Part shown: positions 2,983 through 49,214 of the stretch, in pieces
Layout of the letters: each line of letters begins with the position of its first letter
Position numbering within the stretch: the first letter of the stretch is position 1
Origin: Macrostomum lignano
Lineage: Eukaryota
NCBI GenBank assembly: GCA_002269645.1
Contig: NIVC01002145.1
Span: 62,001-126,000 of the forward strand
Length of the DNA: 64,000 nucleotides
Reading direction: 5' to 3'
Made by a program: the position numbers and the translations under genes
Notes under the pieces: generated by a model
The model's input: only the letters and a program-made list of their open reading frames with translations
What the model was told of the DNA's origin: nothing
Databases searched by the model: none

Positions 2983-4854
2983 AACCTCCAATAAAAAATT
3001 ACAAATTTGCGAGTGTATAGCATCTTTGTACTTTAGTTGTCTGTGTGCCCGATACTAAATGACAATACAATTTTTGTAATTTGCAATCGATTTTTTCTGT
3101 AGATTATCATCAAGAAATGAAAAAATAACAAAAAAATAGAACCAATTCATTATAAATAATATTCTTGTCAGCTTGTCATTAATAAAAAAACTGCTTCAAT
3201 GTGCCCCTACTTACTTATTCATACTACTAGAAAGATTAGTGGTACCATTGCTAGCGACTGAGGATTTTTCCAATTTTCCAATTTTAAATGAGTGGATCAA
3301 GACACTGCATTTTTGCTCAGCTGACTCACTTTGACACCTCCCCTAAATCGAGTGGCGACATAAACTACATAAATTTAAATTCATTTCAGTAAACTACTGT
3401 TAATTTAAGTAGAGGGTGTAGATTTTTTAGAAGAGAAAATGATTAATGAGTATATAGGATTGACCATAGACTGTTTTTACATAGCAGAAAGGCTGGTGTA
3501 GGACTGTAGGGCCAGCGTGTGTGAATGAAAGAAGGGCGAGGGGAGTTGTGAGACCTGCACCAATAAAAACGATCAACTGAATTACTGACCCAGGATTGAT
3601 TTTTGATTGCTTGCATTCTCACTGAAGCAAGGAATTTAGTTTCAATTCATTTGCAACATCTGGCGAACGATTTCTCTGCCACTTTCTGTTAAGACGTGGC
3701 CAATTGGAAGGAGCTTAATGTTTCGATTGACAAATATTGACTCCGAGATGATGGTACGAACGAGGTCTGCGCCGTCTCAGACGCGTTGAGCAGATGTCCA
3801 CTCGCGTATGATTTTCACTTTCCTGGAAGCTTTTACATAGGAGAGCAGCGTCACTCTCAAGCCGTCAATGCACTTTAGAGCTTCCAAGAGCTTAGGAGCT
3901 TCCAAAAACCATGCAAGACGGTAAACGAGATCTGACTCTCGCGCTAACGGCTTGTGTGCCACGAAATATTGACCGGGGGGTTGTCTTGCGATTCGCAACA
4001 CATAATGGCCAATCCCAAAGCACAGAGAGAATGTACATTCCTAACGATTAAAATGTCAGAAAGTCAGGCCCGCTGTATAACCAGTGTGAGCGTTTGTACG
4101 AGTGCGTGCCTGCTTGAATGTGCTCAGGACTCAGCCGAATGGGGAGAATTGCCGAAGGCGTTTCGCCAGGGTCCCAACGAAGCCCCCTCCAATTATCAAT
4201 TATTGTGGGGGTTAGCCGGTATCTCATGGCACCCCGGGCCATTTGGCAAAGTGAGTTTCTGAGGTAAATAAAATAATGATGAGGACGCATCTTTTTTCAA
4301 TCTTAAAACCGCACTTTTTGCTTCGATGTGCTTTCCCCCTACTATCAGTAGGCTAGCTTAGGATTTTCTCTCTATTCTCTCATCTAGGCTGAGTTCTATA
4401 CTAACTAATGACATTACTATTAATTATGTTAGATAATTTACTTACCTTAGGATTCTAATTTTGGATTGTTTACGCATCTTTGAAGGTCAGACTGTCTGGG
4501 TCTGATGCGGATTGACCTCTGACAGCCTAGACAGGCGACACTAAGTCTGGGAGGAATGTTTTTAATCTCATTCTGACCCCCCTGATTTGTGACTTTTTCA
4601 CTATTTTTAGCAATTTGTGACGGTCTAGCTGTCACCTTTGGCTCCAGCCCATCTGGGTCAAAGAGGTCTTTCCAGCTTTCTCCCCACTCGCTCTGTTACC
4701 TTCTCCTTTGATTTATGGGGGTTCTGCAGTCACTTTTGGCGCCAGGATGTCTAGACAAGTGACTTTTATTATGCTTTGCACATGATTTATGACCGCACCT
4801 GTCAACTTCCCTGGGGTCTGAAGGCCACCTGGTGGGGTGGGTTTTGGGGTCTTG

Positions 4855-15429: not shown

Positions 15430-18400
15430 GAAGAAGACATTCAGTCACGCATAATGCGAAGTCTAGCAGAGTTTACGAATAATTCTCAGCTGTGTGGCTT
15501 TATTATGCTGCTGACTGTTGCTGGCTGCATCTTGGTTCTTGCACTATTTATCATTCTCTGCGTGCCACGCTGCGTTAAGGCCAATAAATACAGGGTAATT
15601 ATTGCTTTATTGATTCAGAGCTCATATTGAACGTTTGTCCCCACGATTGATAAATATGGCAATAAATGTGCAAAATTCTATTTTGAACAGGTTTTCACAC
15701 CGCAATCGGAGTCGCCAGTTCAGACGCAGCCCACTACACCGACATTTCCTCTTCTGCCTCCGTCAATCGAAGCATCTTCGGCAACGCCAGCGTTGGACTC
15801 CAGCAACAGTAGTAACTTTGGTGGCAGTCACGGCAGTCGATGGCCAAGCAGCCAGCTGTTGCTGGATCCGACCGCCGCGATGCTGGAGCCGGCGGCCAGA
15901 TTCCTGATACCGCGAGTCCGGCTAGCAACGCCTGAGGCTGCTCCGCCATCAGGAGTCATCCTGGGTGAGCTGGGGCGAGGAGTCTGGGACCCCTAGTTAA
16001 TAACGTGCCGGTGGCAGTTTATTTCAAGCACTGCAGGGGGTACTGTAGAAAGGGGTACTGGTCAGACATTGATGGACAAGTCAGTGTAGGGTCAAGGATT
16101 GTAGGGTCAGGCACTGTAAGGTCAGGCACTGTAGGGTCAGGTATTGTAGGGTCAGGCACTGTAGGGTCAGGCTATGTAGGGTCAGGCAATGTAGGATCAG
16201 GCATTGTAGGGTCAGGCATTGTAAGGTCAGGCACTGTAGGGTCAGGTATTGTAGGATCAGGCATTGTAGGATCAGGCACTGTAGGGTCAGGCACGGTAGG
16301 GTCAGGCACTGTAGGGTCAGGCTATGTAGGGTCAGGCAATGTAGGGTCAGGCATTGTAGGGTCAGGCACTGTAGGGTCAGGCATTGGTGGGTAGACTGTT
16401 ACAATATCTTGAGCACTGACTCTGCATACCAACTCACTAAAACACACGCGACCGGAAGCTCCGGACCCGCTGCGGATGGACCGGAAGCACCTGTACTTCC
16501 TGAGCGAACTCGGCCCGGCCTGGTTCGGCCCCGTAGTTCGAGCCGACTGCACCCGCTACGGCGAGAGCCTCCGCGACCGGGTCATCGTCCGGCTGCTCAC
16601 CTGCGGCGACAGTCGAGGCCGGAATAGGCGGCATTTCTTGGCCGATTTGCAGGCCTATCGGGAGTGCTCGGCTGATCCGTGCGTCCTTCGGCTGCTAGCG
16701 ATCTGCCCGGAGGAGCCCTGCTTGGCCGTGATGGAGGCCGCGGCTGTGAGGGGCTTGAATTCTGACCTGGATATAGTTAGTTAGCCAGTTAGTTTTGTCC
16801 CAAGAAACTTTGGGGACCTCCGCAAAGCAGCCCGCAGCCCGCAAAGCAGGCGCACGCTATCAAAGGGTGCGGAGCTCATCTTAGAGAACACCCAGGGCCT
16901 TGGAATTTGTGTGGCCACATGCTGAGGTACCGAGGTACTTGGGCGAGAGAGTTAGACTGAGATTACTGAGATTACTCTGCACTGTATGGGCAGCTCTGAG
17001 AATGAATTTAGTTTATGGTCCTACAGGTATATCGGGTTGATATCCCTCAGGTGTTAACTGGTGGTTGATCTGTCTCAGGTGGTAACTGATTGATCTGTCT
17101 CAGGTGGTAACTGGTTGATCTGTCTCAGGTGGTAACTGATTGATCTGTCTCAGGTGGTAACTGGTTGATCTGTCTCAGGTGGTAACTGGTTGATCTGTCT
17201 CAAGTGGTAACTGGTTGATCTGTCTCAAGTGGTAACTGGTTGATCTGTCTCAAGTGGTAACTGGTTGATCTGTCTCAAGTGGTAACTGGTTGATCTGTCT
17301 CAAGTGGTAACTGGTTGATCTGTCTCAGGTGTTAACTGGAGGTTGATCTGTCTCAGATGTTAACTGGTTGATCTGTCTCAGGTGGTAACTGATTGATCTG
17401 TCTGAGGTGTTAACTGGTGGTTGATCTGTCTCAAGTGGTAACTGGTTGATCTGTCTCAGGTGGTAACTGGTTGTTCTGTCTCAGGTGGTAACTGGTTGAT
17501 CTGTCTCAGGTGGTAACTGGTTGTTCTGTCTCAGGTGGTAACTGGTTGATCTGTCTCAGGTGGTATCTGGTTGATCTGTCTCAGGTGTTAACTGGTTGAT
17601 CTGTCTCAGGTGTTAACTGGAGGTTGATCTGTCTCAGGTGTTAACTGGTTGATCTGTCTCAGGTGTTAACTGGTTGATCTGTCTCAGGTGTTAACTGGAG
17701 GTTGATCTGTCTCAAGTGGTAACTGGTTGATCTGTCTCAGGTGGTAACTGGTTGATCTGTCTCAGGTGGTATCTGGTTGATCTGTCTCAGGTGTTAACTG
17801 GTTGATCTGTCTCAGGTGTTAACTGGAGGTTGATCTGTCTCAGGTGTTAACTGGTTGATCTGTCTCAGGTGGTAACTGATTGATCTGTCTCAGGTGTTAA
17901 CTGGAGGTTGATCTGTCTCAAGTGGTAACTGGTTGATCTGTCTCAGGTGGTAACTGGTTGATCTGTCTCAGGTGGTAACTGATGGTTGATCTGTCTCAGG
18001 TGGTAACTGGGTGTAAACAACCCTTAACAAATCGAATATTAACATCCTTAGGTAAACAAACAGTTATGCCAGACTCTATAAACTCATGCTATTAACCCCT
18101 TTAGACCGACCTGAAGTCCCTGTTGCTGTCCGAGCGCCAACACGCTGTGACATGCGGCAGCAAGCTTCTGGCTGACAACTTGACGATTCGATTCGCCTCC
18201 CAGGCCAGCCGCGGACTGGCCGCCCTTCACGACAAAGGATTCGTCTATCAGGATGTTGGAGCCAGGAACTACCAGGTAGCAACCGGCTCCATGGTTGTGA
18301 AAATTGGCGACTATGGGTGCACACAGCTTCTGCATCCGGTGAGGCTCTTGGTAGCTGACTTTGCCGCGCGTATTTCTGAAACTCGGGTCACAGGGAAGTT

Positions 18401-21985: not shown

Positions 21986-22972
21986 AGTTTTTTTATGCAC
22001 TCGAACGTTGATTATTTTACATTGTTTAAACTCAATTAAACTAAAGGTTTTCCGTAAAACAGCATGACAACAATACTAAGGAAATTGACGCTCAGTTAAG
22101 TCTTTTACACAATGCTACTCGTAAAATACATAATTAGCACGCTTCGACTATACTGAAACTCTTCTCTACAAAATCTGTTTCTGGTTGTTAATTTTTAACT
22201 TTCTGGCAACTTGACAACGGGCCAAAGATATATTATTCAACAAGAGCATCAATTGTGGCACACACTTGCTAAGAGTGTGTTGTAGATAGGCTTTGTTCAG
22301 GAACAGCTTTCGGATCTCTGCTTCTCTCAGTTCTCCCTTGCTAAGCGAATAGAACGAGAATTGTAGCGAACATTGCAGCAGCAGCAGCGGCAGCATCGGT
22401 GCCTGCCGTCTTCAACTGCATGGAGCCAAGGTGACCCAGACGCCAGGACTTGGAGTTGCCAACTCTTGCCCAAGCCAAATCCACTCTTAACAATCCAGAC
22501 TCCTGGCTCTGGGTCTCCTTGATCGGAGCCCACGCGCAACTGTAGCGAAACACAGCCACCCCCAACCCTCCCCTTCCATGGAGCCATTGCATTCGGGATT
22601 CGAAAATTAGTATTTTGAACAAGAGAAAATATTCAATGAAAAAAGGACTGATTCGGAAGCTGGAAAATGGGAAAGCAGTTTCGGAGCCTCATTGCTGGAC
22701 ATTTGAGATGCAGGGATGCTGCGCCTTCCTCATCAGAGCGTTGGAGCATCGGGTTTCTAAGAAATTGATACAAGTGCCGCGGCTCTCCTCTGATCTGTCA
22801 CTGGCTGTCATTGTGCAGCTCGTCCGCCCACCTGCCAGCTCCTCACCCGCTCCCCTCTCCTCCTCCGCGGCCGACTCTCCGGCCAGAGCCCTTGGGTTCG
22901 ATTCCCTGCGCGGGTCACGCTAATTAACGGGAGGGCTGAATAAGCGCTACGTTCTAAATATTAACTAACTAG

Positions 22973-23298
<326 letters not shown>

Positions 23299-25310: not shown

Positions 25311-26134
25311 CAGCCAATCTTATAATCAAATAAGCACCCAGCTGGCCCCGCATGGGATTCTGGAGGCCAGTAATTACAGGCCGGACACAGTGTTATGCTG
25401 TTAGATAAGTTACAAAAGAAAATTTCGTGGGAAAGTCATCAAGCCTGAGCTAAAACATGAAGGATGCATAGCACCAATGTGATAGGCTCTGAAGCAAGCG
25501 CAAATAGAAGACCAAGTATAACAAAGCAAAGGATTAGAGCTAGACAGAGACAGAGAAAGGAGAAACAAACGCACATAGGATAGAGAGAGGCCTGCAGTTG
25601 CAGGTTCACCAATTGTATCAAAAACATCGCTTGCGTTCGGAGGAAGAATCGGGGGGGGGGGCGCGGCGGGTGCGGGGGCCTGCGCGAGAGCGGGCGGCAA
25701 TGGCGCGGCCTGGGTTACAGCTATAGCCGAGTCCTCCTTCTCTTCTTCCTAATATTCGAATATTCGGAAATTTTCGCTACATTCTTCACCGCGCCAGCTA
25801 TGAAGAACTGTGCACCCGGGAGCTAAGCGAGAGTGAGGGGGAGACGAGAGGAGAGAAAAAAACAGGATCGAGGTTGCCAACCCCCCCGCTAGCTATGCGA
25901 GCTGCTCCACCTTCTCATTCTTGGCCGGGGCCCGATTGTAGCAAAACTTGAAAGCCATGCAGGCAGCTTGAGAAAGGGGCAGAGGGCTCCGGCTTTGGGG
26001 GGCCGAGCAAACGCAACCTCTCAGTCCCCAGCTTTCGGACTGGCTTGCTGCTGATTCCATGGCTATCTGTGTGTCCTTAGCGGGAGTCCTCAGTTCCGAT
26101 AGACACTGAGACACTTTTTATCAATAGTTTTGAA

Positions 26135-26151
26135 GACAGACAGACAGACAC

Positions 26152-26242
<91 letters not shown>

Positions 26243-26358
26243 CACAGACACACAGACAGACAGACAGACACACAGACAGACAGACAGACAGACAGACACA
26301 TAGACAGACAGACAGACAGACAGACAGGCAGGCAGACAGACAGACAGACAGGCAGACA
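26135..26358. repeat. (GACA)n microsatellite with GGCA/CACA variants
   Basis: Direct observation. Confidence 0.95.
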
Positions 26359-27401: not shown

Positions 27402-30353
27402 CTACAAAGGTAGAAAATAAAATTAACTGACAATCAAACAGACACAGAAATCTGTTCCAGTTGTGTCTGTAGGTTATGTGGACCACCTGAGAGCCAGAGC
27501 CTCAAACAGACAGAGAAATCTGTTCGAGTTGTGTCTGTAGGTTAGATGGACCAGCTATTCTACAGCACTTCTAGGCGATAATCTGAGCCAGGAATCTCCA
27601 AGAGCCTCTCGTTACACATCCAGATGTTCTGCCTTGATGCTGGACTAGCTCACTTTCTAGGAATCTGTTCTGATTGCATTCTAACAAACTGAAGCATTCT
27701 CGGCACTAAACTTTCTCGGCGGCTCTGAGAGCCAGAGCCTCAAACAGACAGAGAAATCTGTTCGAGTTGTGTCTGTAGGTTAGGTGGACCAGCTATTCTA
27801 CAGCACTTCTAGGCGATAATCTGAGCCAGGAATCTCCGAGAGCCTTTCGTTACACATCCAGATGTTCTGCCTTGATGCTGGACTAGCTCACTTTCTAGGA
27901 ATCTGTTCTGATTACATTCTAACAAACTGAAGCATTCTCGGCACTAAACTTTCTCAGCGGCTCTGAGATCCAGAGCCTCAAACAGACAGAAATCTGTTCG
28001 AGTTGTGTCTGTAGGTTAGGTGGACCAGCTACTCCACAGCACTTCTAGGCGATAATCTGAGCCAGGAGTCTTCGAGAGACTTTCGTTACACATCCAGATG
28101 TTCTGCCTTGATGCTGGACTAGCTCACTTTCTAGGAATCTGTTCTGATTGCATTCTAACAAACTGAAGCATTTTCTGCACTAAACTTTCTCGGCGGCTCT
28201 AAGAGCCAGAGCCTAAACAGACAGAGAAATCTGCTCGAGTTGTGTCTGTAGGTTAGGTGGACCACCTTCTGAGAAACAAAGCCTCAAACAGACTGAGAGA
28301 GCTGCTTCAGTTCTGTCTGTAGGTTATGTGGACCATTTAAGAGCCAGAGCCTCAAACAGACAGAGAAATCTGTTCGAGTTGTGTCTGTAGGTTAGGTGGA
28401 CCAGCTATTCTACAGCACTTCTAGACGATAATCCGAGCCAGGAATCTCCGAGAGCCTCTCGTTACACATCCAGATGTTCTGCCTTGATGCTGGACTAGCT
28501 CACTTTCTAGGAATCTGTTCTGATTGCATTCTAACAAACTGAAGCATTTTCTGCACTAAACTTTCTCGGTGGCTCTAAGAGCCAGAGCCTAAACAGACAG
28601 AGAAATCTGCTTGAGGAGTTGTGTCTGTAGGTTAGGTGGACCACCTTCTGAGAGACAAAGCCTCAAACAGACTGAGAGAGCTGCTTCAGTTCTGTTTGTA
28701 GGTTATGTGGACCATTTAAGAGCCAGAGCCTCAAACAGACAGAGAAATCTGTTCGAGTTGTGTCTGTATGTTAGGTGGACCAGCTATTCTACAGCACTTC
28801 TAGGCGATAATCTGAGCCAGGAATCTCCGAGAGCCTCTCGTTACACATCCAGATGTTCTGCCTTGATGCTGGACTAGCTCACTTTCTAGGAATCTGTTCT
28901 GATTGCATTCTAACAAACTGAAGCATTCTCGGCACTAAACTTTCTCAGCGGCTCTGAGAGCCAGAGCCTCAAACAGACAGAGAAATCTGTTCGAGTTGTG
29001 TCTGTAGGTTAGGTGGACCAGCTACTCCACAGCACTTCTAGGCGATAATCTGAGCCAGGAATCTCCGAGAGCCTCTCGTTACACATCCAGATGTTCTGCC
29101 TTGATGCTGGACTAGCTCACTTTCTAGGAATCTGTTCTGATTGCATTCTAACAAACTGAAGCATTCTCGGCACTAAACTTTCTCGGCGGCTCTGAGAGAC
29201 AGAGCCTCAAACAGACAGAGAAATCTGTTCGAGTTGTGTCTGTAGGTTAGGTGGACCAGCTATTCTACAGCACTTCTAGGCGATAATCTGAGCCAGGAAT
29301 CTCCGAGAGCCTTTCGTTACACATCCAGATGTTCTGCCTTGATGCTGGACTAGCTCACTTTCTAGGAATCTGTTCTGATTACATTCTAACAAACTGAAGC
29401 ATTCTCGGCACTAAACTTTCTCAGCGGCTCTGAGATCCAGAGCCTCAAACAGACAGAAATCTGTTCGAGTTGTGTCTGTAGGTTAGATGGACCAGCTACT
29501 CCACAGCACTTCTAGGCGATAATCTGAGCCAGGAGTCTTCGAGAGACTTTCGTTACACATCCAGATGTTCTGCCTTGATGCTGGACTAGCTCACTTTCTA
29601 GGAATCTGTTCTGATTGCATTCTAACAAACTGAAGCATTTTCTGCACTAAACTTTCTCGGCGGCTCTAAGAGCCAGAGCCTAAACAGACAGAGAAATCTG
29701 CTCGAGTTGTGTCTGTAGGTTAGGTGGACCACCTTCTGAGAGACAAAGCCTCAAACAGACTGAGAGAGCTGCTTCAGTTCTGTCTGTAGGTTATGTGGAC
29801 CATTTAAGAGCCAGAGCCTCAAACAGACAGAGAAATCTGTTCGAGTTGTGTCTTTAGGTTAGGTGGACCAGCTATTCTACAGCACTTCTAGGCGATAATC
29901 CGAGCCAGGAATCTCCGAGAGCCTCTCGTTACACATCCAGATGTTCTGCCTTGATGCTGGACTAGCTCACTTTCTAGGAATCTGTTCTGATTGCATTCTA
30001 ACAAACTGAAGCATTTTCTGCACTAAACTTTCTCGGTGGCTCTAAGAGCCAGAGCCTAAACAGACAGAGAAATCTGCTCGAGTTGTGTCTGTAGGTTAGG
30101 TGGACCACCTTCTGAGAGACAAAGCCTCAAACAGACTGAGAGAGCTGCTTCAGTTCTGTTTGTAGGTTATGTGGACCATTTAAGAGCCAGAGCCTCAAAC
30201 AGACAGAGAAATCTGTTCGAGTTGTGTCTGTATGTTAGGTGGACCAGCTATTCTACAGCACTTCTAGGCGATAATCTGAGCCAGGAATCTCCGAGAGCCT
30301 CTCGTTACACATCCAGATGTTCTGCCTTGATGCTGGACTAGCTCACTTTCTAG

Positions 30354-30650
30354 CATACATGCGCAACAGTCGGCCGAGTCGGCCGATCCGGCCGACCGAT
30401 TTGGCGGCCAACCAAGGTAAGTCGCAAAAATGCCCACCCGAAAGAATCATACGTAGTACTAATTAGATGACGAGGCATTTAGCCCTTATAAGACAGTTAT
30501 AGTTACTTCTGCCGTTTACCCAAAATTGCGTTAATTTTGCTTAAGGGTTTCTTTTACAGGTAAGTCGCATTTTTGGCCAAAAACTACGTCGCATTTTTTG
30601 TTAAAACTAAGTCGCACGGCCGACCGAATTTTGGAGGTTGCGCATGTATG
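30354..30650. mobile_element. 297-bp MITE (8-bp TSD; hAT- or P-superfamily-like) inserted in the satellite
   Basis: Perfect 14-bp TIRs CATACATGCGCAAC / GTTGCGCATGTATG. TSD CTTTCTAG at 30346-30353 and 30651-30658. The interrupted monomer resumes exactly. Confidence 0.93.
30459..30521 (-). other. Diverged LSU (28S) rRNA fragment, helix 69-71 region, inside the MITE
   Basis: Minus strand GGGTAAACGGCAGAAGTAACTATAACTGTCTTATAAGGGCTAAATGCCTCGTCATCTAATTAG versus remembered eukaryotic consensus GGGTAAACGGCGGGAGTAACTATGACTCTCTTAAGGTAGCCAAATGCCTCGTCATCTAATTAG: 53/63 ungapped by hand. Confidence 0.85.
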
Positions 30651-33600
30651 CTTTCTAGGAATCTGTTCTGATTGCATTCTAACAAACTGAAGCATTCTCG
30701 GCACTAAACTTTCTCAGCGGCTCTGAGAGCCAGAGCCTTAAACAGACAGAAATCTGTTCGAGTTGTGTCTGTAGGTTAGATGGACCAGCTATTCTACAGC
30801 ACTTCTAGGCGATAATCTGAGCCAGGAATCTCCAAGAGCCTCTCGTTACACATCCAGATGTTCTGCCTTGATGCTGGACTAGCTCACTTTCTAGGAATCT
30901 GTTCTGATTGCATTCTAACAAACTGAAGCATTCTCGGCACTAAACTTTCTCAGCGGCTCTGGGAGCCAGAGCCTCAAACAGACAGAGAAATCTGTTCGAG
31001 TTGTGTCTGTAGGTTAGGTGGACCAGCTATTCTACAGCACTTCTAGGCGATAATCTGAGCCAGGAATCTCCGAGAGCCTCTCGTTACACATCCAGATGTT
31101 CTGCCTTGATGCTGGACTAGCTCACTTTCTAGGAATCTGTTCTGATTGCATTCTAACAAACTGAAGCATTCTCGGCACTAAACTTTCTCGGCGGCTCTGA
31201 GAGCCAGAGCCTTAAACAGACAGAAATCTGTTCGAGTTGTGTCTGTAGGTTAGGTGGACCAGCTACTCCACAGCACTTCTAGGCGATAATCTGAGCCAGG
31301 AGTCTTCGAGAGACTTTCGTTACACATCCAGATGTTCTGCCTTGATGCTGGACTAGCTCACGTTCTAGGAATCTGTTCTGATTGCATTGTAACAAACTGA
31401 AGCATTTTCTGCACTAAACTTTCTCGGCGGCTCTAAGAGCCAGAGCCTAAACAGACAGAGAAATCTGCTCGAGTTGTGTCTGTAGGTTAGGTGGACCACC
31501 TTCTGAGAGACAAAGCCTCAAACAGACTGAGAGAGCTGCTTCAGTTCTGTCTGTAGGTTATGTGGACCATTTAAGAGCCAGAGCCTCAAACAGACAGAAA
31601 TCTGTTCGAGTTGTGTCTGTAGGTTAGGTGGACCAGCTACTCCACAGCACTTCTAGGCGATAATCCGAGCCAGGAATCTCCGAGAGCCTCTCGTTACACA
31701 TCCAGATGTTCTGCCTTGATGCTGGACTAGCTCACTTTCTAGGAATCTGTTCTGATTGCATTCTAACAAACTGAAGCATTTTCTGCACTAAACTTTCTCG
31801 GTGGCTCTAAGAGCCAGAGCCTAAACAGACAGAGAAATCTGCTCGAGTTGTGTCTGTAGGTTAGGTGGACCACCTTCTGAGAGACAAAGCCTCAAACAGA
31901 CTGAGAGAGCTGCTTCAGTTCTGTCTGTAGGTTATGTGGACCATTTAAGAGCCAGAGCCTCAAACAGACAGAGAAATCTGTTCGAGTTGTGTCTGTAGGT
32001 TAGATGGACCAGCTATTCTACAGCACTTCTAGGCGATAATCTGAGCCAGGAATCTCCAAGAGCCTCTCGTTACACATCCAGATGTTCTGCCTTGATGCTG
32101 GACTAGCTCACTTTCTAGGAATCTGTTCTGATTGCATTCTAACAAACTGAAGCATTCTCGGCACTAAACTTTCTCGGCGGCTCTGAGAGCCAGAGCCTCA
32201 AACAGACAGAGAAATCTGTTCGAGTTGTGTCTGTAGGTTAGGTGGACCAGCTATTCTACAGCACTTCTAGGCGATAATCTGAGCCAGGAATCTCGAGAGC
32301 CTCTCGTTACACATCCAGATGTTCTGCCTTGATGCTGGACTAGCTCACATTCTAGGAATCTGTTCTGATTACATTCTAACAAACTGAAGCATTCTCGGCA
32401 CTAAACTTTCTCAGCGGCTCTGAGATCCAGAGCCTCAAACAGACAGAGAAATCTGTTCGAGTTGTGTCTGTAGGTTAGGTGGACCAGCTACTCCACAGCA
32501 CTTCTAGGCGATAATCTGAGCCAGGAGTCTTCGAGAGACTTTCGTTACACATCCAGATGTTCTGCCTTGATGCTGGACTAGCTCACGTTCTAGGAATCTG
32601 TTCTGATTGCATTGTAACAAACTGAAGCATTTTCTGCACTAAACTTTCTCGGCGGCTCTAAGAGCCAGAGCCTAAACAGACAGAGAAATCTGCTCGAGTT
32701 GTGTCTGTAGGTTAGGTGGACCACCTTCTGAGAGACAAAGCCTCAAACAGACTGAGAGAGCTGCTTCAGTTCTGTCTGTAGGTTATGTGGACCATTTAAG
32801 AGCCAGAGCCTCAAACAGACAGAGAAATCTGTTCGAGTTGTGTCTGTAGGTTAGGTGGACCAGCTATTCTACAGCACTTCTAGGCGATAATCCGAGCCAG
32901 GAATCTCCGAGAGCCTCTCGTTACACATCCAGATGTTCTGCCTTGATGCTGGACTAGCTCACTTTCTAGGAATCTGTTCTGATTGCATTCTAACAAACTG
33001 AAGCATTTTCTGCACTAAACTTTCTCGGTGGCTCTAAGAGCCAGAGCCTAAACAGACAGAGAAATCTGCTCGAGTTGTGTCTGTAGGTTAGGTGGACCAC
33101 CTTCTGAGAGACAAAGCCTCAAACAGACTGAGAGAGCTGCTTCAGTTCTGTCTGTAGGTTATGTGGACCATTTAAGAGCCAGAGCCTCAAACAGACAGAG
33201 AAATCTGTTCGAGTTGTGTCTTTAGGTTAGGTGGACCAGCTATTCTACAGCACTTCTAGGCGATAATCTGAGCCAGGAATCTCCAAGAGCCTCTCGTTAC
33301 ACATCCAGATGTTCTGCCTTGATGCTGGACTAGCTCACTTTCTAGGAATCTGTTCTGATTGCATTCTAACAAACTGAAGCATTCTCGGCACTAAATTTTC
33401 TCGGCGGCTCTGAGAGCCAGAGCCTCAAACAGACAGAGAAATCTGTTCGAGTTGTGTCTGTAGGTTAGGTGGACCAGCTATTCTACAGCACTTCTAGGCG
33501 ATAATCTGAGCCAGGAATCTCCGAGAGCCTCTCGTTACACATCCAGATGTTCTGCCTTGATGCTGGACTAGCTTACTTTCTAGGAATCTGTTCTGATTAC

Positions 33601-36600
33601 ATTCTAACAAACTGAAGCATTCTCGGCACTAAACTTTCTCGGCGGCTCTGAGAGCCAGAGCCTCAAACAGACAGAAATCTGTTCGAGTTGTGTCTGTAGG
33701 TTAGGTGGACCAGCTACTCCACAGCACTTCTAGGCGATAATCTGAGCCAGGAGTCTTCGAGAGACTTTCGTTACACATCCAGATGTTCTGCCTTGATGCT
33801 GGACTAGCTCACTTTCTAGGAATCTGTTCTGATTGCATTCTAACAAACTGAAGCATTTTCTGCACTAAACTTTCTCGGCGGCTCTAAGAGCCAGAGCCTA
33901 AACAGACAGAGAAATCTGCTCGAGTTGTGTCTGTAGGTTAGGTGGACCACCTTCTGAGAGACAAAGCCTCAAACAGACTGAGAGAGCTGCTTCAGTTCTG
34001 TCTGTAGGTTATGTGGACCATTTAAGAGCCAGAGCCTCAAACAGACAGAGAAATCTGTTCGAGTTGTGTCTGTAGGTTAGGTGGACCAGCTATTCTACAG
34101 CACTTCTAGGCGATAATCTGAGCCAGGAATCTCCGAGAGCCTCTCGTTACACATCCAGATGTTCTGCCTTGATGCTGGACTAGCTCACTTTCTAGGAATC
34201 TGTTCTGATTGCATTCTAACAAACTGAAGCATTCTCGGCACTAAACTTTCTCGGCGGCTCTGAGAGCCAGAGCCTTAAACAGACAGAAATCTGTTCGAGT
34301 TGTGTCTGTAGGTTAGATGGACCAGCTATTCTACAGCACTTCTAGGCGATAATCCGAGCCAGGAATCTCCGAGAGCCTCTCGTTACACATCCAGATGTTC
34401 TGCCTTGATGCTGGACTAGCTCACTTTCTAAGAATCTGTTCTGATTGCATTCTAACAAACTGAAGCATTTTCTGCACTAAACTTTCTCGGCGGCTCTAAG
34501 AGCCAGAGCCTAAACAGACAGAGAAATCTGCTCGAGTTGTGTCTGTAGGTTAGGTGGACCACCTTCTGAGAGACAAAGCCTCAAACAGACTGAGAGAGCT
34601 GCTTTAGTTCTGTCTGTAGGTTATGTGGACCATTTAAGAGCCAGAGCCTCAAACAGACAGAGAAATCTGTTCGAGTTGTGTCTGTAGGTTAGGTGGACAA
34701 GCTATTCTACAGCACTTCTAGGCGATAATCCGAGCCAGGAATCTCTAAGAGCCTCTCGTTACGCATCCAGATGTTCTGCCTTGATGCTGGACTAGCTCAC
34801 TTTCTAGGAATCTGTTCTGATTGCATTCTAACAAACTGAAGCATTCTCGGCACTAAACTTTCTCGGCGGCTCTAAGAGCCAGAGCCTCAAACAGACAGAG
34901 AAATCTGTTCGAGTTGTGTCTGTAAGTTAGATGGACCAGCTATTCTACAGCACTTCTAGGCGATAATCTGAGCCAGGAATCTCCGAGAGCCTCTCGTTAC
35001 ACATCCAGATGTTCTGCCTTGATGCTGGACTAGCTCACATTCTAGGAATCTGTTCTGATTGCATTCTAACAAACTGAAGCATTCTCGGCAACAAAAAATT
35101 CTCGGCGGCTCTGAGAGCCAGAGCCTCAAACAGACAGAGAAATCTGTTCGAGTTGAGTCTGTAGGTTAGGTGGACCAGCTACTCCACAGCACTTCTAGGC
35201 GATAATCTGAGCCAGGAATCTCCGAGAGCCTCTCGTTACACATCCAGATGTTCTGCCTTGATGCTGGACTAGCTCACTTTCTAGGAATCTGTTCTGATTG
35301 CATTCTAACAAACTGAAGCATTCTCGGCACTAAACTTTCTCGGCGGCTCTGAGAGCCAGAGCCTCAAACAGACAGAGAAATCTGTTCGAGTTGTGTCTGT
35401 AGGTTAGGTGGACCAGCTACTCCACAGCACTTCTAGGCGATAATCTGAGCCAGGAATCTTCAAGAGACTTTCGTTACACATCCAGATGTTCTGCCTTGAT
35501 GCTGGACTAGCTCACTTTCTAGGAATCTGTTCTGATTGCATTCTAACAAACTGAAGCATTCTCGGCACTAAATTTTCTCGGCGGTTCTGAGAGCCAGAGC
35601 TTCAAACAGACAGAGAAATCTGTTCGAGTTGTGTCTGTAGGTTAGGTGGACCAGCTATTCTACAGCACTTCTAGGCGATAATCCGAGCCAGGAATCTCCG
35701 AGAGCCTCTCGTTACACATCCAGATGTTCTGCCTTGATGCTGGACTAGCTCACTTTCTAAGAATCTGTTCTGATTGCATTCTAACAAACTGAAGCATTCT
35801 CGGCACTAAATTTTCTCGGCGGCTCTGAGAGCCAGAGCCTCAAACAGACAGAAATCTGTTCGAGTTGTGTCTGTAGGTTAGGTGGACCAGCTATTCTACA
35901 GCACTTCTAGGCGATAATCCGAGCCAGGAGTCTCCGAGAGCCTCTCGTTACACATCCAGATGTTCTGCCTTGATGCTGGACTAGCTCACTTTCTAGGAAT
36001 CTGTTCTGATTGCATTCTAACAAACTGAAGCATTTTCTGCACTAAACTTTCTCGGCGGCTCTGAGAGCCAGAGCCCTAAACAGACAGAGAAATCTGTTCG
36101 AGTTGTGTCTGTAGGTTAGGTGGACCACCTTCTGAGAGACAAAGCCTCAAACAGACTGAGAGAGCTGCTTCAGTTCTGTCTGTAGGTTATGTGGACCACC
36201 TAATAGCCAGAGCTCTAAACAGACAGAGAAATCTGTTCGAGTTGTGTCTGTAGGTTAGGTGGACCAGCTATTCTATAGCACTTCTAGGCGATAATCTGAG
36301 CCAGGAATCTCCGAGAGCCTCTCGTTACACATCCAGATGTTCTGCCTTGATGCTGGACTAGCTCACTTTCTAGGAATATGTTCTGATTGCATTCTAACAA
36401 ACTGAAGCATTCTCGGCACTAAACTTTCTCAGCGGCTCTGAGAGCCAGAGCCTCAAACAGACAGAGAAATCTGTTCGAGTTGTGTCTGTAGGTTAGGTGG
36501 ACCAGCTTCTCTACAGCAATTGAGTTGCAGGCCTTGCAGCTAGCTACTTTGAGATCATCAAACGAAACTCACTTTTCTGGACTCGGTGTCGACGGATTTG

Positions 36601-38249
36601 CGAGCAGACTGATGATTTTCACCAGGCGATGCGGCTTCTTCGATTTCGCAGTGGCTTTTTGCGACGGTGTTTTTTTAGTTTTTATTTTAGGCTTGGCGTC
36701 CTTTTTTGCGGGTCATCATATCTTGGTTGTAGATTACAGTTTTTGGCACAATAAATTTATATATGGATGAAACTTGGAGTAATGATTAACATTAGACCTA
36801 TTAAGTATAAAAAACCGTTCTAATTTATACAATTGCAATCCTTTAGAGTTGTATAGTATGGATTATAAGTACTTTCTTTTAAACTGTCTGTGTCTGGTCT
36901 CACTACGCCATGGTTTACGTGGACCACCCGCTTAGACATTATATATCCCTCTCTCCACTGTCTTACCTTCAGAACGCTTGCGGGTTTCCTATTGGCTGCG
37001 GTCGGTCCCATTGTTGGGGTGGATCTATCCTCCTAAGTGTTAACCAGCCAATTATAGAAAGGGAGGTCTGTCTGTCTGTCTGTTCCAACCCTATACTCCT
37101 GCACATGTGTTTACGTGGACCAAACAGACAGTGAGTGTTAGGCTGACTGTTAATGCGTTCTTAGTTTTACTGGGACCGCAATCAAGTCGACCTTTTGCTA
37201 GAGAGTCAGAGACCCAATCGCTAGCTAAAAGGCCCTTCTTAATTGCGTCCTCTTGATCAAATCTTTTGCATGTACATGTATGAATTGTCCTTTTCAATTA
37301 GGTAAATTGCATCTTCAACTTTGCACTTGAAAGGCTGCAGCTTAGGATCTTCTTCTTCCAACATTGGAGGAGGATAGAACAGGATATCCCATAGTGTTTA
37401 GGATAGAATTGGCAAGCACTTAATTCATGAAGTTGCTATTTTCTTCTTGTGTAATGGTAGAGCCTCAGAAATTCGCATTTACACAGTGTGGCTATCAAGG
37501 ACCACTGGGAGTTCTTGAGAAGTCATTGAAGAATACTATTTAGGCTTCACTTAAATATCTTTCTTGTCTCGGAGTCTTTATCGTTTGATCTGGTTAGCGA
37601 ATTGGATTTCTTTACGTTGGTGTCTTACTCTGTGAGTCTGTGCTCAGAGTACGATACCGAAATTGCTGGAACTGAGCTAATTAAATGGAGTTTAAAGTTT
37701 ACTGTATCAAATTCATTTCGCATACGAGGTTTCAGAATTTAACCTGCGTACCTACTTGAATGTCAAAGATGTTGAACGCATATTGTTTTAAAGCCAGTGG
37801 CGGTCATAATATGATGTTAACATAGCCATTTGTTCGTAAGGTAATGATCTGTAAAAAATTCAGTTTTGCATCGAATCTATGCTTAATAACTGCTATACAC
37901 AAACAGACACAAACAGACACAAACAGACACAAACAGACGATTTTCGAAAAATTTTCTAAAATTTTTCGGTTTACGTGGACCAGACTCGCTCAGTTTAGGT
38001 AGACCAGGCTGGAGGTCCAGCTAAACTGAAATGCAAATAACTTTGGAAAAAACCATGCTAGACATCCCAAAATTGCTTAAGCCTTTCTTGACCCGCCTGA
38101 CATTAATGTGAGATCCTCATCAACGTCTTAACCCCACCAGAGACAAAATTATTTGGTGGTCCACCTAAGTGGTCTACCTACACCGGGTGGTCCAGCTAAC
38201 GAGGCTACTAAACTTCCAAAAAGTCCACGTAAACACACAGACAGTAGAA

Positions 38250-38302
38250 CAGACAGACAGGCAGGCAGACAGACAGACAGACAGGCAGACAGACAGACAG
38301 AC
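38250..38302. repeat. (GACA/GGCA)n microsatellite just upstream of the DM1 exon acceptor
   Basis: Direct observation. Confidence 0.9.
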
Positions 38303-38329
38303 GATCAGTTCAACCCTGGCCACTCGCAG

Positions 38330-39204
38330 GCAGCAGCACAGGCTGCAGTCAGCGGCAGTGCCAGTCAGCCTGGGCCCTAGCGGAGGCTACAGCAACCGCA
38401 AGCAGTACTTCTGTCGAAAGTGCAAAGGCCACGGCATCAACATTAGCGTCAAAGGTCACAAGCGGAACTGCAAATACAGAACCTGCCCCTGCCCCAAGTG
38501 TGAACTGGTGGAGCACGGTAGGCAGATTGTGGCCAAGCAGATTAGCAATTATCGCAAGCAGCGAACTCAGGACCTACTTGCTGAGCAGGAGCAGCGGCTG
38601 AAAGGTCATCCGCCGCCGCCTCCACCGCTTCCACCCTCGGCAGCGCAGTCTCAGCTGGCGTCTCTGGCAGCAGTGGCGCAGCTTCCGGGGTTTCTGGCTC
38701 AGGCTGGCAGTTCCTCGATACCTCGGTCAGCCGAAGCGAAGCGGCTGCAAGCGACTGCCGGAGGCACGAAGGAGGGTGAGGGTGAATTCTCAGACTGTTG
38801 AACAATGAGCCTCAGAGATGCTTCTTAAGGTCAAACTAAAAAGAGAATCCTTCCCCAGGTCAACATAGAAAGGGAATCCTTTCCAAGGTCAAACTAGAAG
38901 GGGAATCCCCCCTAAGGTAAATCTCGGAGGGGAATCCTCCCAAGGTCAAAATAGGTGAATCCTCCCCAAGGTCAAGCATGCGAGACGATGCTAGAAGAGA
39001 CTAACCAAACTTCTCCACATCCCGCCGTTCAGACGAAGGCCCGCACTGTCGTCGGTGCCGCAACCACGGCATAATTCAATTGTGGCGCGGTCACAAGAAG
39101 CGCTGCCCGAAGGCGCAGTGCATCTGCGACGATTGTTCGCTAATTGCGCTGCGCAAATCCAACGACAAGTCGCTGAGGGAAGAGAACCAGCAGTCGCAGC
39201 AACG

Positions 39205-39237
<33 letters not shown>

Positions 39238-39358
39238 ACAGCAACAAATCACCACCAGATTCGATCACTTAGACTTCAAGCACGATGATCAGTTCACTTC
39301 CGCCATCGCCGGTGGCCATTTAAGCGCGTTTGGGCACCACCATCACCACCACCACCAC

Positions 39359-39389
<31 letters not shown>

Positions 39390-40592
39390 TTCAGAATCAG
39401 CAGCTGCCAAGCAGCAGTCGCCGTCCTCAGCGGCCCGTGGCGCCCGTAGCGCCGTTTCCGCATCAGCAGCATCAGCAGCTGCACCATCAACACCACCCGC
39501 CAGCGCCGACCATCGGGTCCTTGACTCTGGAGCCGATCGAAGCGGCCGCGGCGGCTGCCGCGGCTGCAGCGGCGGCTGCGGCTGCTGCAGTATCGGCGAC
39601 GTCCACCGAGGAGTCCATCAAGCCGGACCCGGCCGCATCTGCGACCGCGGCCATCGGAGACACCGTCGCGTCAATGACCCCGCCGACAGGCTTGGAGGAA
39701 AAAAGTGAGCAGCAGCTCTGAGCTGCAGCAGAAATACAGGGGGGCATCCAATCCGAGAGATGACTGCTGCTCAAGCAGATCTTGGGAAATGAAACTGCGA
39801 GTGCTCAAAAAAATCCACAAGCAATTTTTCATTCCAGCAGCTCGTCACTATCAGCCGTTTTGCTTCCCCGGCGTCGGCGTTGGCGGAGGCGGCATCGGCG
39901 GGCCGGAAGTCGACATTGGAGGCGTCGGCGCTTTCGACCTACCTAGCGGTGGCATCGGCGGCGGCGCCGGCTGCAGTGTCGGCTTTGAAGAGCAGTCGGC
40001 GTCGCTCTACCAGAAGGCGCAGTCTTGCTGGCGGCTGGCCGACCCTTACGGGTCTGGCGGCGGTGAGTACAACCGATTGAGCAGACATTTTGACATGAGA
40101 CAGCGGACACTTAGACAATAGACAGCAGACACTCTGACAATAGACAGCAGAAACCTCGACATGAGACAGCAGAAACCTCGACATGAGACAGCAGACACTT
40201 TGACAATAGACAGCAGATATTTTGACAATAGACAGCGGAAATTTTGACAATAGACAGCAGACATTTTGACAACATACAGCAGACACTTTGACAATAGACA
40301 GCAGACACTTTAGTAATATTCAGCAGACACTTTCACAATAGACAACAGACTGAATGGAGGATAAACTACTGTCAGTAGGAAAAATCGCGCAGCCAATGAG
40401 CTCAAACATTGAAACATTGACATTGACATCGCAGTGTACGGCAGCTACCAGGACCCGTACAGCAACTACTTTGCGCAACAGCAGGCCAAGCTGGAGCAGC
40501 AGTACGTGGCTGCCGGGCAGTACCTACCGACCTCCTTGGCTGGCGACATTGCTGACTCGCAGGGAGGCATGTGGCCTGGAAGCAGCATCTGA
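38330..40592 (+). CDS. DMRT (doublesex/mab-3-related) transcription factor with two DM domains; ~518 aa if exon 24470-24525 is included
   Basis: Exons 38330-38775 (DM1: FCRKCKGHG..VKGHKRNCKYRTCPCPKC), 39033-39704 (DM2: PHCRRCRNHG..WRGHKKRCPKAQCICDDC; polyQ/H/A), 39838 (or 39841)-40062, 40435-40592 (stop). All three junctions are phase 1. Confidence 0.88.
38825..38975. repeat. Degenerate ~28-bp repeat (GGGAATCC..CCAAGGTCAA), DMRT intron
   Basis: About 5 units. Confidence 0.75.
40085..40330. repeat. ~22-bp repeat (GACAATAGACAGCAGACACTTT), DMRT intron
   Basis: About 11 degenerate units. Confidence 0.85.
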
Positions 40593-41522: not shown

Positions 41523-42414
41523 CCTCATTAAAAAGAGAATAGGAGCTGGTCTGGTCTAATTCCAACTGTTGCAATAAAAATTATAACAATTAATTGTTGT
41601 TTTTACAATTCAATTTTCAAAGAAATATCAAATTTTGAACATTTTTCATTGTCGCTTTAGGCACTCTTGTCCAAATATCCAGATCCTGTTTGTTAAATAG
41701 CTACTGTACTTGGATAAAAATGTCACACTGCACTTTTTTGCGAAAAGAAGAATAAAAATTAAAGTTTGCAAATGCCCCTATGCTATTGATGTCAGTGAAA
41801 TGGTAGTGCTAGTGACATGTAGGTGTTGTTTGCAGTTAGTCATTACGATTTTATTGATTAAAAAAGCGTTATTTATCATGGCTCACTGAATTAAGCTTCA
41901 CTGATTGCAAATAAAAATGGCATAATACACAGGTGCGTCATTCGTTCATTGTTGCTTAACCCGCGTCCAAACTATAAAAGCTAATTAATTGGTATTGCTG
42001 TCACTCGAGCTTCTCTCTTTTTGAGCAAATATTTAAGCACCATTTTCAGCTACAAATTAACATTAGCAATACCAAGCCAATTTCATCAGCACGCCGACCA
42101 CGTGTCTGCAGCAAATCGAACTGCGAACTTCGGACTTCGACTATGGACACTCTGCTTCAAATTTCTATGAGGTCTCTGAGCTGTCTCTGAGCTAAGGGGT
42201 GTATTGAATGCACTGGCGCTTAAAAGAAAATCCGACCTTCTGGAAGAATTTAATATCTCGACAATCCGGAGGGATGGCAACTTGATTCTTGTTTGAAAAG
42301 GTGCGCAACAAAAAGTTTAACCGCGTTCTTGAAGTTCGTGTGCCTGCGCTGCTACGTTACGGCGCAGCAAAACATGTTAGGGATGTGATTTCACCCCGGT
42401 AGTTCAACTGTTAA

Positions 42415-43560
42415 GCTACCAATTAAGCTACCATTTTAACAACGATTCGAGCTACCATTTTAACAACCATTCGAGCTACCATTTTAACAACCATTCGAGC
42501 TACCATTTTAACTACCATTAGAGCTACCATTTTAACTACCATTCGAGCTGCCATTTTAGTTACCATTCGAGCTATCATTTCAACTACCATTCAAGCTACC
42601 ATTTAAACTACCATTCGAGATACCATTTTAACTACCATTCGAGATACCATTTTAACTAACTACCATTCGAGCTTCCATTTTAACAACCATTCGAGCTACC
42701 ATTTAAGCTACTATTCGAGCTACCATTTTAACTACCATTCGAGGTACCATCTAAGCTACTATTCGAGCTACCATTTTAACTACCATTCGAGGTACCATCT
42801 AAGCTACCATTCGAGCTACCATTTTAGCTACCATTCGAGCTACCATTTAAGCTACTATTCGAGCTACCATTTTAACTACCATTCGAGGTACCATCTAAGC
42901 TACCATTCGAGCTACCATTTTAGCTACCATTCGAGCTACCATTCGAGCTACCATTTAAGCTACTATTCGAGCTACCATTTTAACTACCATTCGAGCTACC
43001 ATTTTAACTACCATTCGAGCTACCATTTTAGGCTACCATTCGAGCTACCATTTTAGGCTACCATTCGAGCTACCATTTTAACTACCATTCGAGCTACCAT
43101 TTTAGCTACCATTCGAGCTACCATTTAAGCTACTATTCGAGCTACCATTTTAACTACCATTCGAGGTACCATCTAAGCTACCATTCGAGCTATCATTTTA
43201 GCTACCATTCGAGCTACCATTCGAGCTACCATTTAAGCTACTATTCGAGCTACCATTTTAACTACCATTCGAGCTACCATTTTAACTACCATTCGAGCTA
43301 CCATTTTAGGCTACCATTCGAGCTACCATTTTAACAACCATTCGAGCTACCATTTTAACTACCATTCGAGCTACCATTTTAGCTACCATTCGAGCTACCA
43401 TTTAAGCTACTATTCGAGCTACCATTTAAGCTACTATTCGAGCTACCATTTTAACTACCATTCGAGGTACCATTTAAGCTACCATTCAAGCTACCAATTA
43501 AGCTACCAGTTAAGCTACTGCTCAAGCTACCATTCGAGCTACCATTCTTGCTACAATATA
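42415..43560. repeat. ~12/24-bp minisatellite (TTCGAGCTACCA / TTTTAACTACCA)
   Basis: Alternating 12-bp subunits. Confidence 0.93.
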
Positions 43561-47299: not shown

Positions 47300-47359
47300 C
47301 TGCTAGGGGATGCAGGTGGTTGAAGTTCAAGGTGAGTGGCGCGTAGGTGCACGTCAAAT

Positions 47360-48682
47360 TGGAACTCCAACATCCTGAGATTGGAACTCCAACATCCTGA
47401 GATTGGAACTCCAACATCCTTAGATTGGAATCCAACATCCTCAGATTGGAACTCCAACATCCTTAGATTGGAACTGCAACATCCTCAGATTGGAACTCCA
47501 ACATCCTCAGATTGGAATCCAACATCCTTAGATTGGAACTCCAACATCTTCAGATGGGAACTCCAATCCAACATCTTCAGATTGGAACTCCAACATCTTC
47601 AGATGGGAACTCCAATCCAACATCTTCAGATTGGAATCCAACATCCTCAGATTGGAATCCAACATCCTTAGATTGGAACTGCAACATCCTCAGATTGGAA
47701 CTCCAACATCCTCAGATTGGAATCCAACATCCTTAGATTGGAACTCCAACATCTTCAGATGGGAACTCCAATCCAACATCTTCAGATTGGAACTCCAACA
47801 TCTTCAGATGGGAACTCCAATCCAACATCTTCAGATTGGAATCCAAAATCCTCAGATTGGAACTCAAATATTCTCAGATTGGAATCCAACATCCTCAGAT
47901 TGGAATCCAACATCTTCAGATGGGAACTCCAACATCCTCAGATGGGAACTCCAATCCAACATCTTCAGATGGGAACTCCAACATCCTCAGATGGGAACTC
48001 CAATCCAACATCTTCAGTTTGGAATCCAACATCCTTAGATTGGAACTCCAACATCTTCAGATGGGAACTCCAATCCAACATCTTCAGATTGGAATCCAAC
48101 ATCCTTAGATTGAACTCCAACATCTTCAGATGGGAACTCCAATCCAACATCTTCAGATTGGAATCCAACATCCTCAGATTGGAATCCAACATCTTCAGAT
48201 TGGAATCCAACATCCTCAGATTGGAATCCAACATCTTCAGATTGGAATCCAACATCTTCAGATTGGAATCCAACATCCTCAGATTGGAATCCAACATCCT
48301 CAGATTGGAATCCAACATCCTCAGATTGGAATCCAACATCCTCAGATTGGAATCCAACATCTTCAGATTGGAATCCAACATCCTCAGATTGGAATCCAAC
48401 ATCCTCAGATTGGAATCCAACATCCTCAGATTGGAATCCAACATCCTCAGATTGGAATCCAACATCTTTAGATTGGAATCCAACATCCTCAGATTGGAAT
48501 CCAACATCTTCAGATTGGAATCCAACATCCTTAGATTGGAACTCCAACATCTTCAGATTGGAATCCAACATCCTCAGATTGGAATCCAACATCCTCAGAT
48601 TGGAATCCAACATCCTCAGATGGAAACTCCAAAATCCTAAGATTGGAACTCCAACATCCTTAGATTGGAACTGCAACATCCT
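47360..48682. repeat. 21/22-bp minisatellite (GGAATCCAACATCCTCAGATT and variants)
   Basis: About 60 units. Confidence 0.95.
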
Positions 48683-49214
48683 CTAGGATACAGTGCGTCA
48701 AATGATGGTCTACTATAGACAATATCTAAACCTGCATAGTACACTAGCTTGACATCCTAGGTTCGAATTTGTAAACGCCGATGATAATAAATGAGCAAAG
48801 AGAAAAAGGCAAACAGAAAGTTGAAGCCATGCTCAGTGCAGGAATTATTTTTAGCTTTTATGACAGCCGAGTCCGTGAGTGCTAAATACTCGAAACACTT
48901 TAAATTCCTACACAACACTCTACTATGAGTAGAAAAGCACGAGTAGGCAAGGATGTATAAATATTAATGGAAAAAATGCTGAGACCATAGCTCTTACTGA
49001 AACCAGTTAGTATAAAAATGGGTGATCGCATTTCTCAATTGTTCTGCTGGCCAGGCTGGTCAGTATGTGAGGTTAGTCAGGGTTATAATTAATTTATTCA
49101 CCCGGGGAAGAATACCATTATTTTATGTACCGATGCTAATCGTGGATTTAAATTCCCTCTTGTTAAATGTTAGTAAATTTAAAAAGATGCAAAACACCCC
49201 TTTATTTATACTCT

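Follow-up and report, generated by a model that had tools for sequence, protein, structure and literature searches.

A degenerate 28S rRNA fragment, probably a passenger, inside a hAT-like non-autonomous DNA transposon inserted into a satellite array

A small transposable element of 297 bp, located at positions 30354-30650 of the window (the whole stretch of 64 kb of DNA that was analysed), contains in its interior a stretch that resembles 28S rRNA. The explanation which we consider probable is that this stretch is a passenger: a piece of rDNA which a hAT-like non-autonomous element captured at the level of DNA. In the following, the carrier, the rRNA similarity, the layout of the element and the pattern of mutations are presented, and other explanations are weighed where the data bear on them.

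The element is framed by two copies of the 8-bp target-site duplication (TSD) CTTTCTAG (30346-30353 and 30651-30658, both on the plus strand) and possesses perfect terminal inverted repeats (TIRs). The inverted repeat reported by the detection program is 16 nt long and 100% complementary (AGCATACATGCGCAAC / GTTGCGCATGTATGCT); its two outermost bases at either side are part of the TSD, and once these are subtracted, 14-nt arms remain (CATACATGCGCAAC), which constitute the left end (30354-30367, plus strand) and, 100% complementary to it, the right end (30637-30650, minus strand; GTTGCGCATGTATG when read on the plus strand). With up to two mismatches allowed, the TIR is matched twice in the window, and both matches are the ends of this element. 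For an empty-site test, the two flanks were joined, one CTTTCTAG was kept, and the resulting 50-mer was compared with the rest of the window. The joined sequence is a satellite monomer: the reconstructed site was found exactly in 18 of the 29 other monomers of the surrounding satellite, and the other 11 are within two mismatches of it. These matches are paralogous empty sites; therefore, a cut-and-paste insertion with an 8-bp TSD is demonstrated. The host array, which extends from 27487 to 36270 (~8.8 kb, as determined by Tandem Repeats Finder), has nested periods consisting of 68-bp subrepeats and of higher-order units of 238 bp and ~376 bp. Its blocks match internally at up to 95-96%, and the transposon breaks just one of the ~30 monomers, the 29 others carrying the target uninterrupted. 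The element is a genuine class II non-autonomous transposon, which inserted recently into one satellite monomer.

The satellite is not the only repetitive sequence in the window. Minisatellites with units of 12-50 bp are very dense (67 Tandem Repeats Finder rows scoring at least 200 in 64 kb); examples are found at 1-465, 1922-2983, 8115-8783, 10316-10941, 17062-18010, 42414-43554, 47354-48683, 50939-52121 and 61298-62600, and many of the long open reading frames (ORFs) of the window are mere translations of such arrays. Pure tetranucleotide microsatellites are present as well, namely (TAAC) with ~84 copies at 22962-23298 and (AGAC) with ~56 copies at 26134-26358. GC content falls sharply to 0.25 at 56001-58000, compared with 0.40-0.55 elsewhere in the window. 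An exon-like ORF at 595-1503 (plus strand) corresponds to a two-pore-domain potassium channel (Pfam Ion_trans_2, E=1e-24); its best relatives, which are only ~55% identical over the pore region, are scattered across cephalopods, bivalves, annelids, arthropods and flatworms. DM (doublesex/mab-3) domains occur in two neighbouring ORFs, both on the plus strand: the domain is complete at 38169-38801 (54 bits) and partial at 39080-39721 (24 bits, the Pfam cut-off being 27), where long tracts of poly-Q, poly-H and poly-A come after it. The two ORFs may represent a single gene with two DM domains, as is the case for nematode mab-3, or two genes; the protein search with the DM-domain ORF gave no match below E=0.001. 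Judging by these ORFs, the host is an animal, and its lineage seems to be missing from the protein collections that were searched.

With its perfect TIRs, its small size, its lack of coding capacity and a TSD for which empty sites can be demonstrated, the element is comparable to a MITE. No ORF in it is longer than 57 aa. An internal ORF of 42 aa has no relatives among 5.8 billion proteins, and its comparison with 1.84 billion cluster-representative proteins yielded just two marginal, repeat-like matches. An autonomous partner was not seen, the TIR having no further occurrence in the 64-kb window, and a sensitive BLASTN comparison of the element with the masked window, together with the TIR search, gave only noise in place of a second copy. 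Exact-pattern scans of metagenome, viral and prokaryotic collections with the left end, the TIR pair and the mutated rRNA site found no copy of the element; the source genome lies outside these collections. A literature search found no report of the TIR sequence. The transposon proposed in an earlier note on this DNA is confirmed by its TIRs, TSD and empty sites; with one copy seen in the 64-kb window, its membership of a MITE family is putative.

The 8-bp TSD points to a hAT-like superfamily. The target consensus of hAT elements is nTnnnnAn, and CTTTCTAG, having T at position 2 and A at position 7, fits this pattern. However, P-like elements likewise generate 8-bp duplications, and the TIR starts with CATAC and not with YARNG (CAG/TAG...), which is usual for hAT elements; agreement is limited to the first two bases. 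Since P-like elements share the length of the TSD and since the CATAC terminus is atypical for hAT, we infer the superfamily rather than demonstrate it, and a P-like affiliation is also possible. Two further types of element have other hallmarks. Instead of the TTAA duplication and the residence in 28S genes that characterize piggyBac/Pokey, we found the 8-bp CTTTCTAG and a satellite site; instead of a retroposed unit of the SINE28 type, we found TIRs and a central segment with no A-rich tail at either end.

A permissive cmscan of the 64 kb identified a sole match with E of at most 1, which was to LSU_rRNA_eukarya (RF02543) on the minus strand at 30445-30569. Over the whole window it scored 42.7 bits with E=8.7e-7 (model positions 2199-2320 of 3401); on a subregion of 401 nt, the values were 36 bits and E=3.7e-7. 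Both scores are below the gathering score of 50 bits, and the Rfam scan of the window at the gathering threshold returned nothing. In addition, the fragment was compared by means of BLASTN with LSU genes on metagenome contigs, which had been recovered by a scan with a 26-mer from the fragment: identity was 88% over 66-68 nt (E ~1e-19), and the alignments had 4 mismatches, 2 gaps and an exact block of 23-26 nt. A resemblance by chance or an assembly artefact would agree with a score that does not reach the gathering threshold. We regard it as extremely improbable, given the E-value for the whole window, the BLASTN values with their exact block, and the fact that the element around the fragment has kept its termini and TSD intact. 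The RF02543 match is a fragment of an rRNA gene, not a gene.

The part which is significant independently is the 77-nt universal core alone (GGGTAAACGG...ATGATT; 30445-30521, minus strand), as supported by cmscan, BLASTN to LSU genes and gapped alignment. This core derives from eukaryotic 28S rRNA and comprises helices H69-H71 with the I-PpoI/R2 site. The 60 nt upstream of it, into which the cmscan match extends up to 30569, are indistinguishable from shuffles (P=0.74), and so are the 45 nt downstream (P=0.997). A longer rRNA fragment reaching 30569 was considered and rejected as a demonstrated feature, the extension being not significant by sequence. The best member of the Rfam clan and the 23S sequence at the same position show that the fragment is of the eukaryotic nuclear and not of the bacterial or organellar type. 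In the cmscan alignment, two of the six stem pairs of H69 (A-C and A-G) and two pairs of H71 are non-canonical, and the fragment is unable to form the rRNA helices. Both the similarity to LSU rRNA H69-H71 and the broken H69 stem had been noticed before the computational analysis, and both proved correct.

The layout of the element was deduced from repeat detection and motif searches. Next to the left TIR, GC-rich subterminal repeats occupy positions 30368-30402; they contain GTCGGCCG/CGGCCGAC motifs at 30369, 30378 and 30389. More precisely, GTCGGCCG is located at 30369 and 30378, and its complement is found at 30389 and again at 30617. The right subterminal region (30583-30630, plus strand; repeat families D1, D2 and D4) consists of (A/C)GTCGCA-T-rich motif copies at 30585-30606 and 30605-30616, followed by CGGCCGACCGAATT at 30617-30630, where CGGCCGACCGATTT of the left subterminal region recurs; the direct similarity between the subterminal parts has a P-value of 0.001. 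A motif composed of (A)AGTCGCA and a T-run is present at 30420, 30563 and 30610, and a degenerate version of it lies near 30587; the orientation is the same throughout. Two perfect copies of the 12-nt direct repeat AGGTAAGTCGCA (family D1; 30415-30426 and 30558-30569, plus strand) bracket a central segment of 131 bp (30427-30557), which includes the rRNA piece. The remainder of this segment on the right, positions 30522-30557, is filler of unassigned origin; the cmscan alignment to LSU rRNA runs through it, which alone is not significant (P=0.74).

This bracketing would be in accord with a nested insertion: the 131-bp segment, an rDNA pseudogene or another rRNA-derived piece, would have inserted into an element of ~154 bp and duplicated AGGTAAGTCGCA as its own TSD. 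A perfect 12-nt repeat does flank the segment, and by arithmetic the chance expectation of a repeated 12-mer in 297 nt is ~0.003. Moreover, the left copy of AGTCGCA is not the mirror image of the right-end copies, because the motif is found within the element in plus orientation only; this is unlike the symmetric sites of a transposase. On the other hand, the motif occurs twice more in the right arm in degenerate form, and thus the perfect copies may belong to a subterminal array. Poly(A) or any other retroposition tail is missing at the ends of the segment, and only 77 of its 131 nt are demonstrable rRNA. We rate such an insertion as unlikely. If it had occurred, the fragment would still be a passenger, and the route of acquisition alone would differ.

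How the fragment decayed was analysed by comparing the 77-nt core with the universal eukaryotic core. In a gapped alignment, the two differ by 12 events, namely 8 substitutions and 4 indels; G:C>A:T transitions, the usual direction of unconstrained decay, account for six of the eight substitutions. The ungapped alignment on which the earlier note was based could be reproduced exactly (53 of 63 positions match). It shows five consecutive mismatches within TTAAGGTAGC, a run that arises because a +TA/-TA pair shifts the register over five positions. In the gapped alignment, TTAAGG becomes TTATAAGG by the insertion of two bases and AAGGTAGC becomes AAGGGC by the loss of two; the six clustered mismatches are thereby reduced to one substitution plus this pair of indels. 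Consequently, three of the 12 events (C>G, +TA and -TA) are located in the 15-nt site CTCTCTTAAGGTAGC, where 2.3 are expected; the probability of at least three is 0.42. In the ungapped framing, at least six of the ten mismatches fall into the site with P=0.009. As this clustering looked significant, the impression that the I-PpoI/R2 site had been specifically mutated was reasonable, but it is an artefact of the alignment. The perfect block described together with it does exist; its length is 23 nt (AAATGCCTCGTCATCTAATTAGT) and not 22. However, it is not a sign of constraint, the probability of a perfect run of at least 23 nt being 0.12 if 12 events are placed at random in 77 nt. Altogether, the decay looks AT-biased and roughly uniform, and it is compatible with neutrality.

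One of the six transitions, the C>T exchange in GCCAAATG, occurs in nature as well. In 55 LSU rDNA contigs from metagenomes (loci L001-L055; in L002, for example, at 3309-3334), the sequence just 3' of the R2/I-PpoI site reads GGTAGCTAAATGCC and not the usual GGTAGCCAAATGCC. Since these environmental contigs carry GGTAGCTAAATGCC, the "universal" position varies naturally in some eukaryotes. The same 55 loci, which resulted from a second metagenome scan, had been candidates for copies of the element; they were rejected as such, being genuine, probably protist, LSU rDNA with the natural C>T exchange.

Both 2-bp indels are located at cleavage positions: +TA lies in the TTAA that is cut by I-PpoI, and -TA is directly 3' of the bottom-strand nick of R2. 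Pokey also uses the TTAA inside this same I-PpoI/R2 site. One may therefore ask whether the fragment was copied, by error-prone break repair, from an rDNA unit damaged at this R2/I-PpoI/Pokey hot spot, the +TA/-TA lesion being the scar of a break made by an endonuclease or a transposase. In the gapped alignment, the insertion falls inside TTAA and the deletion directly after AAGG, and the change from [AGG][TA] to [TA][AGG] is readable as a single micro-rearrangement. The deletion coincides with the place where R2 nicks the bottom strand, and the two bases that follow this nick are T and A (PMC2718515). In contrast, the top-strand cut of Bombyx R2 is 2 bp upstream of the nick, and this stagger would remove GG, not TA (PMC2718515). 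Furthermore, uniform decay would yield about as many events in the 15-mer as were counted (P=0.42), slippage of TA is common, and the match was made post hoc to one of several possible positions. Such a scar is, in our estimate, quite improbable. We give the coincidence of indels and cleavage positions little weight: it concerns one sequence and several candidate "interesting" positions.

It has also been proposed that the fragment serves a purpose, i.e. that the family keeps a mimic of 28S to which proteins of R2 or of a homing endonuclease would bind, be it as a decoy or as a genuine site, as a means of targeting rDNA or the nucleolus, or as a source of antisense small RNAs against 28S. The 23-nt perfect match to 28S would suit such a role, and so would the presence of the fragment in the source element, which is probable according to the argument on age given below. 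It would moreover be a new case, as class II elements with a piece of 28S coding sequence are missing from the table of a recent review (PMC10946416). Several results argue against it. The 15-mer that would have to be recognized is disrupted by three events, and the distribution of the decay is compatible with neutrality. Rfam scans, both at the gathering threshold and permissive, detected no rDNA in the 64-kb window; this copy resides in a satellite, and its target does not resemble 28S (P=0.87), so that the proposed rDNA-targeting module lacks support. Homology-guided targeting was likewise rejected, the insertion site being unlike 28S and unlike the fragment (P=0.99). Both strands of the element fold better than shuffles (z -4.1 and -5.0), and an RNA-structure signal originating from the rRNA part was considered; it was rejected, as the low folding energy is due to the pairing of the termini and to GC palindromes. 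Because the terminal repeats comprise only 14 nt, the element lacks a long hairpin from which small-RNA pathways could be supplied. There is no positive support for any function, and we infer that the fragment has none; a functional module is very unlikely. A specific variant of it appears even slightly less credible: here the family, perhaps including an autonomous parent, would retain the 28S mimic under selection as a decoy or tether for rDNA-specific endonucleases or retrotransposon proteins, or as an antisense or small-RNA module against 28S, and the +TA/-TA pair would be an adaptive change that protects the element itself from cutting or invasion.

The age of the fragment relative to the insertion can be estimated from the state of the termini. 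All 28 TIR positions and all 16 TSD positions are intact, whereas ~16% of the positions of the rRNA core are changed. At ~16% change per site, the probability of an intact TSD (16 positions) is, by arithmetic, ~0.06 and that of an intact TSD plus TIRs (44 positions) is ~5e-4; because TIRs are under selection, the value for the TSD alone is the conservative one. It follows that the fragment was most likely degenerate already before this copy inserted, and the source element probably carried it in that form. Either the lineage would have carried the fragment for some time, or an rDNA pseudogene would have been captured that was already decayed.

For the preferred reading, a passenger captured from rDNA, this leads to the following scenario. 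About 77 nt of the central filler would be a DNA-level copy of part of a nuclear 28S gene or of an rDNA pseudogene, rDNA being a likely donor because it is abundant. In one conceivable route, gap repair after excision would have switched its template into rDNA; it is by such template switching that deletion derivatives classically acquire their filler DNA. In a second one, the 131-bp piece would have been inserted into the ~154-bp ancestor, and the 12-nt repeat would be its duplication. A retroposition tail was found at neither end of the central segment. Capture from rDNA, which had already been suggested for this locus, is a sensible origin for a degenerate 28S piece in an element with TIRs. 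Note that the perfect 12-nt direct repeat around the central segment is not predicted by filler from template switching. In addition, the passenger reading is based on a single copy, and the CATAC start of the TIRs, the unseen autonomous partner and the location of both 2-bp indels at cleavage positions count against it.

If the fragment is only a passenger, it adds one more entry to the short list of transposable elements with rDNA-derived sequence. It illustrates a route of dispersal, by which a satellite array received a degenerate piece of 28S, and such fragments can give rise to spurious rRNA matches or to calls of "orphan rDNA" in genome annotation. The finding would gain importance only if the fragment turned out to be conserved in the family of the element.

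Among known systems, non-autonomous hAT elements and MITEs are similar with respect to their short perfect TIRs, 8-bp nTnnnnAn TSDs, subterminal motifs, lack of an ORF and a foreign centre. The element differs from hAT elements in that its TIR starts with CATAC and not with YARNG, and in that one copy and no transposase-encoding partner were seen; it could be P-like. An example is provided by deletion derivatives of the Ds type, whose filler DNA reportedly stems from abortive gap repair (Rubin & Levy 1997; Yan et al. 1999). Pack-MULEs and Helitron transduplication are comparable insofar as pieces of host genes are captured or spread by processes at the DNA level.

According to a review published in 2024, the acquisition of rDNA modules by transposable elements is modular reshuffling, mostly without benefit (PMC10946416). 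Its table comprises many modules with a 5S promoter (SINE3, Cassandra, Ajax); for 28S it names the mammalian SINE28, and for the IGS it names repeats found in Pokey, a piggyBac element, and in the MITEs of Pokey (PMC10946416). A cut-and-paste element with a fragment of the 28S coding core is absent from this table, which makes the element described here a new case of a phenomenon already known. Pokey and mPok of Daphnia (piggyBac) come close, as they are a class II element and MITEs with rDNA-derived sequence and are linked to the same 28S region, into which Pokey inserts (PMC10946416). However, Pokey has IGS-derived repeats and a TTAA duplication and lives in rDNA, whereas the element presented here has a piece of the 28S core as cargo, the 8-bp TSD CTTTCTAG and a satellite site. 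SINE28 (Longo et al. 2015, as cited in PMC10946416) is, as far as the review describes it, a mobile element with 28S rDNA sequence, and it is the sole 28S-derived entry in the table (PMC10946416). In contrast to this retrotransposed SINE, our element moves by cut-and-paste, has TIRs and a TSD but no tail, and contains 28S as an internal passenger and not as its body. The 5S-derived modules of SINE3/AmnSINE1, Cassandra and Ajax are also rDNA sequences inside non-autonomous elements (PMC10946416). They are retained because a working Pol III promoter is kept, whereas the 28S H69-H71 segment is degenerate and has no known promoter activity. Finally, orphan rDNA fragments (Robicheau et al. 2017) are, in the account given by the review, short decayed copies of rDNA outside the locus (PMC10946416). 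The fragment differs from these, and from the cargo of Pack-MULEs and Helitrons, in its context: it is neither free-standing nor part of a MULE or a Helitron, but resides in an animal genome within a small element with TIRs.
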